Part shown: positions 15,332-21,715 of the stretch, one piece after another | How the letters are laid out: the number at the start of each line of letters is the position of its first letter | How positions within the stretch are numbered: the first letter of the stretch is position 1 | Assembly (NCBI GenBank): GCA_002189035.1 | Contig: NEEC01000008.1 | Span: 2,170,001 to 2,234,000 of the forward strand | Direction of reading: 5' to 3' | Length of the DNA: 64,000 nt | From: Utricularia gibba | Lineage: Eukaryota; Plantae; Magnoliophyta | Position numbers and translations under genes: made by a program | The notes under the pieces: model-generated | Seen by the model: only the letters and a program-made list of their open reading frames with translations | Database searches by the model: none | Told to the model about the DNA's origin: nothing

Positions 15332-17057
15332 ATGAATAGTAGGCCCCGAAGTATGGGGTTCATGATTCAGTGTTTGCTTGATTATCTGAAAAGGATGCAA
15401 GATGAGAACCCCAGTTTCTTTTATGCCGTTGATGATGATGATGAGCAGTTGGGAAATGTATTCTGGGCTGATTCCAACTCGCAGATGAATTACTGCTATT
15501 TTGGGGACACAATTAGACTGGATACATCGTATAGAACTAACCGTTCAAGGATGCCACTCGTAACCATCACTGGCATAAACCACCATGCGCAGCCAGTACT
15601 TTTTGGGGTTGGATTGATTCTTAATGAATCGGAAAACACATTCATTTGGCTGCTTGAGTCTTTTCTTCAAGCAATGTCGGGTAAGAGCCCTATCTCCATC
15701 ACCTGTGATCCTGACAGAGTCATTCAGATGGCAGTCTCACGAGTACTTCCTGCTGCGCGCACTCGTTTCTGTCGGTGGAGCATATTCAGGCAGACACATG
15801 AAAAGATGGGTGGTGTAGTGCAGGATAATCCTGGTTTTGATTTTGAGCTCAAGAAATGTGTTAATGAAGCCGATATAGTGGAGGAATTTGAGTCCTCTTG
15901 GGCGACCCTTTTGAGCAGCTACTTCTTGATTGATGATGAGTGGCTGCAATCCTTGTACAATATCCGCGATCAGTGGGTTCCTGTGTATCTGAAAGATGTG
16001 TTTTTTGGGGAAGTTTCCATGGTGGAGTGCGTGGATCCCTTGAGCCTACTCTTTGATGGTTGTTTGTCCTTTTCTACCAGCATACAGTCGCTGATTAAAC
16101 AATATGAGAAGGCCATTACCAGTTGGCATGAAAGGGAGTTAAAAGATGATCTTGATACTTGCAGCCACGCCCCTGCTCTTAAAACACCATCCCCAATGGA
16201 AAAACAAGCTGCAGATGTGTATACCAGAAGGATTTTCTTAAAATTTCAAGGGGAACTAGTTGAAACCCTAGCTAACTCTGCAAATATTGTCGATGATGCA
16301 GGCACAATATCAACATATCGTGTATCCAAATTCGGTGAAGAGAAAGACCATATTGTTAGATTCAATGCATTTCAGATGAAAGCAGCCTGTAGCTGTAGAA
16401 TGTTTGAGTTTTCCGGTATCGTTTGCCGACATATACTCTCTGTATTCAGAGCAAAAGATGTGTGGTTGCTTCCTGATGAGTATGTTCTGAAACGGTGGAC
16501 CAGAAATGCCAAAGCTCCCTCCAATGAACCAACAGTTCCTGCATCTGCTCCCATGCTCCCTCATAGTTATTATGAATCCAGAATCATTCGCCAAAGCAAC
16601 CTACGGGAAGAGGCTATCAAGTTTGTGGAAGAGGGTTCTAAATCCATACATGTCTACAATGTAGCAGTGAATGCCCTCCAGGAGGCCTCCAGAAAAGTAG
16701 CAGCTGTGAGAAGCAAAACCGGTGCTTCCTCCAAGGGTACTGCTAATGAGGCCAATGGTGGAGATTTGGAATCACATCCAACCCAAGATCATGCTTCTTC
16801 TTTCATGTCTCAGGTTCCATACTTGTGCTCTCTCACCCCAGTTTGAACATTTCCCTTAAACCCCTCAGTTTTGGCATGTGACACCGCAGGAAGAGAAAAA
16901 GAAGAGAATATGCGACCTGGAAAGCGAGCTGGAGGGAGTGAACCAGAGATGTGCTTTGTATCGCACGGTTCTTCAGGCCCTCTCCAGAGACATTGAAGAC
17001 CAGAAGCTGAAACTGTCGGTTAAGGTTCAAAACGCCAGGCTTTCTCTGAAAGAGTGA
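15332..17057 (+). CDS. FRS9: FAR1-RELATED SEQUENCE 9-like domesticated MULE transposase (no N-terminal FAR1 DNA-binding domain)
   Basis: Exons 15332-16813 and 16890-17057 with a 76-nt GT-AG intron. Contains the MULE core (GNVFWAD, GINHHAQPVLFG), a SWIM finger CSCRMFEFSGIVCRH and a C-terminal coiled coil ending KLSVKVQNARLSLKE, typical of FRS9. Confidence 0.9.
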
Positions 17058-20040: not shown

Positions 20041-20660
20041 CTTGATGAGCTGGTGTGTGGTCTGAACTCTGAAGAAACATTGATGGGTGATTATTACGCA
20101 TTCGCCCTTGCTTGGTATCAGGTCAACGATGCATCAATTATAAATTAAGAAGGATGGATTACGCTGATCGTAATTACCCAAGAGCCCTGTTTTCGATCTC
20201 AGGAATATGTGATATTATCCATTTAATGTACAATAAAATAAAAAATTAAAATACATTACTAAATATATTTAAACAGAAGCACAACTCTTTGATACTAAAA
20301 ACAGTAAATATTATATCCTCAAAGAGTGACATGATGATCTTTCATCAACCAGCTCTTCTTTTGTTATTGCAAGACTTGGAACACATCCTCATGGCACTTG
20401 AACCAGAATCCGGCGCCGTTTGTCTCCCGCCCAAGAGGTCTGGAACATGTGAAGACAACGTTTCGGCTTCGCATTCAGAATTGCAAAAACCACATCGAAA
20501 AGAAGAGATGTCTCTGCGGCACAGTGTGGATCGGATGACTTGCAATGCTGAACCTACAAGCGAACAAAATTCAGGCTCTTGGGATCACCCCTTCTACCAG
20601 ACTTTCCAATGAACCATCACAAGCATGAAGATGATACATTTACAAATTAGACATGTGGAG

Positions 20661-20778
20661 TGCCTCAGAGATAGATGTATAATCACTTGCAGTACAGACC
20701 CACCAAGTATGTTATCCCTGCGGAGCAGGGGCTTGGCTACCTGCCGCTCATATACTATCCAACGAAGCATCACCGGCA
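20661..20778 (-). ncRNA. Box C/D snoRNA, predicted guide for 2'-O-methylation of 25S rRNA U2347 (yeast numbering)
   Basis: Terminal stem TGCC/GGCA, C box GTGATGC (20773-20767), D' ATGA (20751-20748), C' GTGATTA and D CTGA (20668-20665). The D' guide UUCGUUGGAUAGUA forms 14 bp (one G-U) with 25S UACUAUCCAGCGAA, and the fifth-nucleotide rule points at UAC[U]AUCC. Confidence 0.8.
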
Positions 20779-20905
20779 AAATGTGAGTGTTCCCCAACAA
20801 ATCAAAAAGTTCAGTGTAAATATGCACTCTTTTATGCGAATCTAGTGGCTTTAATTTCAAAGCATGAACAAGGTAAGCATCCAGAAAACGAGACCAACAG
20901 ACCAT
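20779..20905 (-). ncRNA. Candidate box H/ACA snoRNA (copy B of a tandem pair)
   Basis: Two-hairpin layout with H box ATAAAA (20835-20830), basal stem GAGTG/CACTC and ACA followed by TTT (20784-20779). It sits between two C/D snoRNAs. No target could be assigned with confidence. Confidence 0.5.
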
Positions 20906-20920
20906 AATACATTGCTCGGT

Positions 20921-21058
20921 GGCAAAATGAGAATGTTCCCCGACAAATGAATAAGCTACACTGTAAAAAAGCAGTCTTTTCTGAGAATGCAGTGGCTTGA
21001 ATTACAGTTATTTCCAAGCATGAACGAGGTTAGCATCAAGAAAACGATACCAACAAAC
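20921..21058 (-). ncRNA. Diverged duplicate of the H/ACA-like element (copy A, possibly decayed)
   Basis: Aligns end to end with 20900-20775 (for example GTTCATGCTT, AAGCCACT, GGGGAACA and CATTTTGCC are shared). H box AGAAAA is at 20982-20977, but the ACA position reads TCA and the basal stem has a mismatch. Confidence 0.35.
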
Positions 21059-21180
21059 TAGAGTAAGTTGATGGGTGACACCAACTTTCTACCAATCAAG
21101 GGTTTTCTGAAGCAGGACGGGCATTCCTAGCGAGTATTCATCGTCGCCATGAAGACTGCAAATCAAATGTCTAAAAAAAA

Positions 21181-21278
21181 TTGGCTCATATCAAGAAATT
21201 CAACCATAATCCCTTGATGCTTCATAGATTGCACAGTGCAAGCCTCAGAAGCGCGGATAAAAGATTAATCATAGCCAA
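21181..21278 (-). ncRNA. Box C/D snoRNA, U36a-type dual guide for 25S A2220 and G2236 (yeast numbering)
   Basis: 5-bp terminal stem TTGGC/GCCAA, C box ATGATTA (21272-21266), D' CTGA (21248-21245) and D ATGA (21189-21186). The D' guide UUUAUCCGCGCUU forms 13 bp with 25S AAGCGCGGGUAAA. The D guide UGGUUGAAUUUCUU forms a perfect 14 bp with 25S AAGAAAUUCAACCA. The predicted targets are 16 nt apart, as for A2220/G2236. Confidence 0.9.
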
Positions 21279-21638
21279 TTTGAATGTTTTTTGCACATGA
21301 AGAAAAAAAGGAACGATCTTGTATTTTCAGATATTGCGGATGTCTTTAGAGGTAAAATCATTGAAGAAGAAAGACGAAACCCCCACGTGAAAACCCGCAT
21401 TACATATTTGCCTCCATGACTAGCCCCTTTCCCATTGCACTAAGCGATCGGGAAACAGCTAAAGGTGTGGAGAGGCAAAAGCAAAGAAAGTGACGGAAGA
21501 CAAGAACTTGATCGCTTCATAAACGAAAAGCCAAACGATGACGACGGATTCGATACGAATCCAGAGACGCCATGAATCATGAAGCAAACCTGCTTACAAG
21601 CTTGAAGGAAAGGCTGCAGTTTATCGCCCAGCGGCTAC

Positions 21639-21715
21639 TAGGGTTTTATTATGAATTGTGGCATCGGCTAGGGCTTCGTTTCGTATAGGGCCCGGGCTTA
21701 CAAATGAATTGGGCT
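21639..21715 (-). promoter_or_regulatory. Telo-box plus site II promoter of the snoRNA host transcript
   Basis: AAACCCTA (21646-21639) lies downstream of GGGCCC and TGGGCT (21710-21715) site II-type motifs, followed by a GTAAGC donor at 21597. This TeloSII architecture is established for plant snoRNA and ribosome-biogenesis genes. Confidence 0.65.

Follow-up and report, generated by a model that had tools for sequence, protein, structure and literature searches.

A sequence of 118 nt on the minus strand of the window (the whole 64-kb stretch of DNA that was analysed), at 20661-20778, is arranged as a box C/D small nucleolar RNA (snoRNA), and we propose, with a probability of about 0.6, that it is a working guide for methylation of the rRNA uridine equivalent to yeast U2347, built on the scaffold of the plant snoR6/Z278 family. 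An earlier note on this DNA had read the locus as a box C/D snoRNA directed at the U2347-equivalent; the computational evidence laid out below supports this core reading as a prediction, and the minus-strand sequence contains the features that the note had described at these positions. The candidate would join two gaps, namely plant Um2350, a methylated uridine without a named guide, and the snoR6/Z278 family, which is bound by fibrillarin and has no accepted function. Otherwise, it represents a gain in annotation within an ordinary class of genes, with a predicted specificity that is moderately interesting.

The locus carried no prior annotation, the open reading frames that overlap it have no Pfam match, and the 64-kb window contains no second copy of its guide. 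Position 1 of the RNA corresponds to window position 20778, and the RNA is read from 20778 down to 20661. Its elements are as follows.

20661-20778, minus strand: the whole predicted box C/D snoRNA, 118 nt, defined from its sequence; its sole Rfam match is snoZ278
20775-20778, minus strand: 5' half of the terminal stem, UGCC (RNA 1-4), read directly from the sequence
20767-20773, minus strand: C box GUGAUGC (RNA 6-12), matching RUGAUGA at 6 of 7 positions, the last A alone deviating
20752-20766, minus strand: D' antisense element UUCGUUGGAUAGUAU, 15 nt (RNA 13-27), of which 14 pair with 25S/LSU rRNA ...UAC-U-AUCCAGCGAA
20748-20751, minus strand: D' box AUGA (RNA 28-31), 1 nt past the duplex, its A1 able to pair with U6 of the C' box
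20689-20747, minus strand: three-tier hairpin, 59 nt (RNA 32-90), predicted by folding, with the inner helix and flanks aligning to the snoZ278 model
20680-20686, minus strand: C' box GUGAUUA (RNA 93-99), a direct sequence reading
20669-20679, minus strand: D antisense element UACAUCUAUCU, 11 nt (RNA 100-110), for which no rRNA target was found
20665-20668, minus strand: D box CUGA (RNA 111-114), also a direct reading
20661-20664, minus strand: 3' half of the terminal stem, GGCA (RNA 115-118), forming 4 bp with UGCC

The C box, the D box and the short terminal stem that are general to the C/D class are all present. The antisense element that adjoins the D' box exceeds the 10 nt required of such guides and places its target at position 5, and in its sequence the locus has the make-up of a real box C/D snoRNA gene. 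In the terminal motif, GGCA directly follows the D box CUGA and a gap of three nucleotides (GGU) separates UGCC from the GA of the C box, which gives K-turn geometry. The tiers of the hairpin are, from the outside inward, GCGGCAGG/UCUG..CUGC, GCCAAG/CUUGGU and CCCUGC/GCAGGG.

The specificity of the candidate is predicted from its 5' antisense element, which lies beside the NUGA box and is complementary to the rRNA segment ...UACUAUCCAGCGAA. With eukaryotic large subunit (LSU) rRNA, represented here by metagenomic sequences that were fetched by an 18-mer containing the target (and are, in this respect, partly circular as evidence) rather than by this plant's own 25S rRNA, the guide forms 14 base pairs, 13 Watson-Crick and one G-U, over guide positions 2-15, and the U of CUAC-U-AUCC is located opposite position 5 counted from the D' box AUGA. 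The scan of metagenome contigs with this 18-mer produced 44 loci, several of them annotated by Rfam, and in about 40 of these the 18-mer is embedded in conserved LSU rRNA context. The D' guide was compared with shuffled guides on a set of three rRNA sequences, an SSU, a 5.8S and an almost complete LSU; of 2000 shuffles, a single one equalled its score. The match also ranks first among those obtained for all D-like tetramers on the minus strand of the 1.2-kb cluster, and it outranks the pairing of the neighbouring U36a D' guide with its own known target. Four nucleotides past the target uridine, the metagenomic loci have a C and yeast has a U, and the G of the guide pairs with both; the C form is presumably the one carried by plant 25S rRNA. 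The 3' element behaves differently from the 5' guide: the best run of UACAUCUAUCU against rRNA is 8 bp, a length reached by 1577 of 2000 shuffles, and as far as rRNA is concerned this element is an orphan, in keeping with what the earlier note had reported of it.

Two independent anchors agree in equating, on sequence grounds, the target uridine with U2347 of yeast, U2348 of Arabidopsis and Um2350 of tomato and tobacco. The first is the yeast RNase T1 fragment UCCCUAUCUAC[Um]AUCUAG described by Taoka et al., in which the Um is made by snR65 and whose position 2345 corresponds to 2347 in the common (SGD) numbering. The second comes from the U36a gene of the same cluster, the D' and D guides of which match positions 2228 and 2212 of the LSU sequence L022, equivalent to Arabidopsis Gm2237 and Am2221; the offset of 9 given by these control sites places the candidate's target, L022 position 2339, at Arabidopsis U2348. 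The U36a D-guide duplex begins at guide position 4, in agreement with Wu et al. Arabidopsis U2348 is found 10 nt after Cm2338 (yeast Cm2337), and the same spacing of 10 nt separates Cm3787 from the pseudouridine-methyl 3797 of human 28S rRNA, as it does Cm2337 from Um2347 in yeast. The 14-nt pairing claimed in the earlier note and its statement that the vertebrate equivalent carries a pseudouridine-methyl modification both hold, and its assignment of the D' guide to the U2347-equivalent, the snR65 site, is corroborated by the yeast fragment and by the U36a offset. The candidate is thereby predicted to select the same uridine as snR65-type guides and shares with yeast snR65 the conserved rRNA segment that is recognized; no kinship between the two RNAs was detected at the level of sequence, snoZ278 being the only Rfam family to match at E-values up to 10, and the likeness is one of functional analogy or convergence rather than of shown homology. 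As for the modification itself, Um2348 is absent from both Arabidopsis RiboMeth-seq maps. A 2024 review tabulates Um2350, from cryo-EM, in both tomato and tobacco and aligns it to yeast Um2347, with Arabidopsis entered as 'np', and gives no guide for Um2350; no plant guide for the Um2350/U2348 site is named in the literature that was searched.

Box C/D snoRNPs are well known to follow the +5 rule and to have K-turn geometry, and long spacers between C' and D' are known from yeast to fold into a closing stem. Folded alone, nucleotides 32-90 of the candidate form one hairpin, the dominant predicted fold, with an energy of -22.9 kcal/mol and 38% of the ensemble. Its stability is unremarkable relative to shuffled sequences (z = -1.0; 31 of 200 shuffles fold as well), and folding of the whole RNA, on both strands, revealed nothing unusual; since the energy is ordinary, we judged the structure by its position and by the match to the Z278 model instead. 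In the predicted fold, the internal helix starts directly behind the D' box AUGA and stops 3-4 nt before the UGA of the C' box, a placement around C'/D' that parallels the geometry of the candidate's own terminal motif. Two K-turns can form in this model, one closed by the terminal stem and the other by the hairpin. The internal bulge comprises 4 nt, not 3, which counts against the proposed guide function. At position 6 the C' box carries U in place of the consensus G, and at position 1 the D' box carries A in place of the consensus C, such that the G-C pair is replaced by U-A. The same compensating pair of UGAUUA and AUGA is present in the plant U36a family (RF01302), both in its consensus and in the neighbouring gene; there it forms the terminal C/D motif, whereas in the candidate it forms the internal C'/D' motif, and U36a, itself a C/D guide of the same cluster, is 96 nt long, lacks the long hairpin and has other targets. 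That the U36a family also uses this matched deviation supports AUGA as the true D' box. An alternative D' register, UGAG at RNA 29-32, would select the preceding C and represents a minor possibility at most; AUGA is preferred to it, as the box that offers the GA and whose A1 can pair with U6 of C'. Within the candidate, GGAUAG of the D' guide (RNA 19-24; 20755-20760) is complementary to CUAUCU of the 3' element (RNA 104-109; 20670-20675), and in an unconstrained fold the two guides pair together, probably by chance, yet in a way that could compete with target binding.

The family relationships of the candidate were explored with Rfam and with the published descriptions of plant snoRNAs. A cmscan search of 20640-20800 at E-values up to 10 generated, apart from snoZ278 (RF00201), only a chance match to the archaeal sR55 on the opposite strand. 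The snoZ278 match reaches 22.1 bits, with a gathering score of 36, at an E-value of 0.26 in a 3-kb search and 0.014 in a 161-nt search; it extends over model positions 1-115 and window positions 20662-20777, including the inner helix and its flanks. Since the hairpin is taken in by this match, it is a family trait, and what the earlier note had called unusually long is the normal snoR6/Z278 architecture. That note had also considered no named plant family to be assignable: this stands insofar as the Rfam match is below threshold, but synteny, together with the hairpin, the low-scoring match to the model and the uncommon length of the RNA, allows a family to be proposed, and the candidate is probably a divergent relative or paralogue of snoR6/Z278 rather than a member by the Rfam threshold. 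Arabidopsis snoR6 (At1gCDbox1.1/1.2 and At4gCDbox1.3), the same as rice Z278, likewise follows U36a and U38 in its cluster, and its variants measure 117, 117 and 118 nt, compared with 118 nt for the candidate and 115 positions for the Z278 model. The internal hairpin is equally placed in the family and in the candidate, with similar flanks, and both have a short 3' element after a degenerate C' box. Three Arabidopsis clusters with the order snoR134/U36a/U38/snoR6/snoR97 have been described by Kim et al., and a study in cotton found U36a, snoR134, Z223 and Z278 to behave together.

The antisense elements follow a different pattern from that of the scaffold. The target files of Patra Bhattacharya et al. 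2016 contain short grape and peach snoR6 strings that are similar to the Z278 consensus in both halves, and it is on account of this resemblance that Z278 and snoR6 are treated here as one family; these fragments were also the only guide or orthologue sequences found in Wu 2021, Azevedo-Favory 2021, Patra Bhattacharya 2016 and a full-text search. In the UGAG...AGCCAA stretch, grape snoR6 (UGAG...GGAGCCAA) resembles the candidate (UGAG...GUAGCCAAG). Neither antisense element of the candidate agrees with the Z278 consensus or with the strings from grape and peach. A search of the Z278 consensus guides against rRNA produced no convincing target, and none near U2348. AtsnoR6 is abundant in fibrillarin-2 immunoprecipitates and has no predicted target; snoR6.3 has been assigned to 25S G2918 together with snoR34, and the other Arabidopsis snoR6 genes, snoR6.1 and snoR6.2, have been called orphans, while the candidate fits U2348 instead. 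Because the family is regarded as an orphan one, its antisense elements are only weakly defining. A speculative extension of these comparisons, which we consider possible but doubtful, is that snoR6/Z278 is a long-hairpin scaffold on which the 5' guide has been swapped among paralogues, the candidate being the as yet unnamed plant guide for the ancient Um2347-type methylation of tomato and tobacco ribosomes. If this equally doubtful extension is true, loss or decay of the guide in the Arabidopsis lineage would explain both the missing Um2348 and the orphan status of AtsnoR6.1 and AtsnoR6.2.

The genomic surroundings of the candidate include three further elements that belong to the cluster.

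21182-21277, minus strand: snoU36a, Rfam RF01302, 69.4 bits (gathering score 45), with guides that recover the Arabidopsis sites G2237 and A2221
21078-21155, minus strand: apparently decayed U38/Z223-like gene, Rfam RF00135 (snoZ223, the U38 equivalent), 23.4 bits (gathering score 45)
21639-21646, minus strand: telo-box AAACCCTA, one of 6 in the 64 kb, on the same strand as U36a and about 360 nt upstream of it

The gene order in the window, U36a, the U38/Z223-like gene and the candidate, agrees with the order in Arabidopsis, two repeats of about 140 nt being inserted here ahead of the candidate. The snoU36a gene is the only match in the window at Rfam gathering scores and, as far as its sequence indicates, is intact, both guides included. 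The U38/Z223-like gene has CGAUGA in the position of the C box and CAGA in that of D', has no D box (no CUGA occurs near its 3' end) and shows two changes in its guide, which has lost its match to the U38 site of LSU rRNA; by these features it looks like a pseudogene. The two tandem units of about 140 nt, at 20779-21062 on the minus strand, are clearly akin to one another (local score 146, compared with 21.7 +/- 4 for shuffles) and have no Rfam match at E-values up to 10. That they are decayed copies of the candidate was considered and rejected, as 130 and 776 of 1000 shuffles, respectively, match the candidate as well as they do. Site-II-like motifs (AGCCCA and GGGCCC) are found just upstream of the telo-box, and the combination is likely to be the promoter of a polycistronic cluster. 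Telo-box and site-II elements are the usual promoter type of plant snoRNA clusters and of ribosomal protein genes.

According to the proposed guide function, the U36a, U38-like and snoR6-like genes would be transcribed as a polycistronic unit from the telo-box promoter. In the candidate RNA, the terminal C/D K-turn would be closed by UGCC/GGCA and the internal C'/D' K-turn (UGAUUA/AUGA) by the hairpin, and a set of Snu13, Nop56, Nop58 and fibrillarin would be recruited at each K-turn. The 5' antisense element would then pair with 25S rRNA, and fibrillarin would methylate the ribose of the U opposite the fifth nucleotide upstream of D', while the 3' element would probably be idle or directed elsewhere.

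The partial erosion of the cluster is the main reason for caution about its function, and it bears directly on the alternative that survives best, although we regard it as unlikely: the candidate would be an idle or decaying snoR6/Z278 paralogue in an eroding duplicate cluster, its match to 25S rRNA being fortuitous or disused and no methylation taking place. The adjacent U38-like gene, deprived of its D box and of a working guide, the two unexplained repeats of about 140 nt inserted between the cluster genes, the sub-threshold Rfam score of the candidate itself and the orphan status of Arabidopsis snoR6.1 and snoR6.2 all count in favour of such decay. Against it, the candidate has kept all of its boxes, the stems that close both motifs and the compensating C'/D' pair, and U36a in the same cluster is intact throughout. 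Furthermore, the candidate's rRNA match exceeds the one that the neighbouring, functional U36a guide makes, and its +5 register falls exactly on a uridine known to be methylated in yeast, tomato and tobacco.

Somewhat more improbable, in our estimate, is that the RNA is expressed and acts as a chaperone, binding pre-25S rRNA via the 14-bp element and perhaps the hairpin arm and aiding its folding, with methylation absent or incidental, a situation that other orphan snoRNAs, or those serving in processing, exemplify. That most snoR6/Z278 members have no assigned methylation target would fit this role, as would a second complementarity: the 5' arm of the hairpin, GCCAAGCCC (20729-20737, minus strand; RNA 42-50), is a perfect 9-nt complement of the rRNA segment GGGCUUGGC, which lies 18 nt downstream of the target uridine and, within the rRNA, makes up the 3' arm of a local inverted repeat, GCCAAG...CUUGGC. 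An additional pairing at this place is possible but weakly supported, about 3-4% of shuffles being equally good, and this slight excess over chance counts against the chaperone role. So do the position of the 14-bp duplex, in the canonical register beside a D' box that is viable and has a C' box as its partner, as a methylation guide requires, and the presence of Um at the equivalent site of other plants.

Finally, it is very improbable that the D' box is instead CCAA at RNA 44-47 (20732-20735), as might be suggested by the snoStrip annotation of the family, which puts D' 15 nt further downstream (CUGA in peach, where it is canonical, and CCAA in grape, in the files of Patra Bhattacharya 2016) and under which the +5 rule would fail for the U, given that CCAA lacks a GA dinucleotide for the sheared pairs, is buried within the middle helix of the hairpin and is preceded by an element with no rRNA match, and that a NUGA directly precedes the purine-rich stretch in the candidate, grape and peach alike.

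Several minor features were observed around the cluster. Just upstream of U36a, at 21300-21365 on the minus strand, there is a C/D-like remnant (AUGAUUU ... CUGA, about 40 nt) in which a pyrimidine-rich 16-mer before AUGA forms a run of 14 positions with the 3' part of LSU rRNA, 11 of them Watson-Crick and 3 G-U; the 16-mer is of low complexity. Downstream of the candidate, 20560-20625 on the minus strand contains the C/D-like series GUGAUGG ... CUGG ... GUGAUCC ... CUGA over about 60 nt; it lacks a clear terminal stem, matches no rRNA strongly and may be a further member of the cluster or a remnant of one. About 4 kb from the cluster, an open reading frame of 504 amino acids at 15332-16846 on the plus strand codes for a transposase of the MULE type, a transposon protein that includes a SWIM zinc finger (Pfam E-value 5.6e-24).
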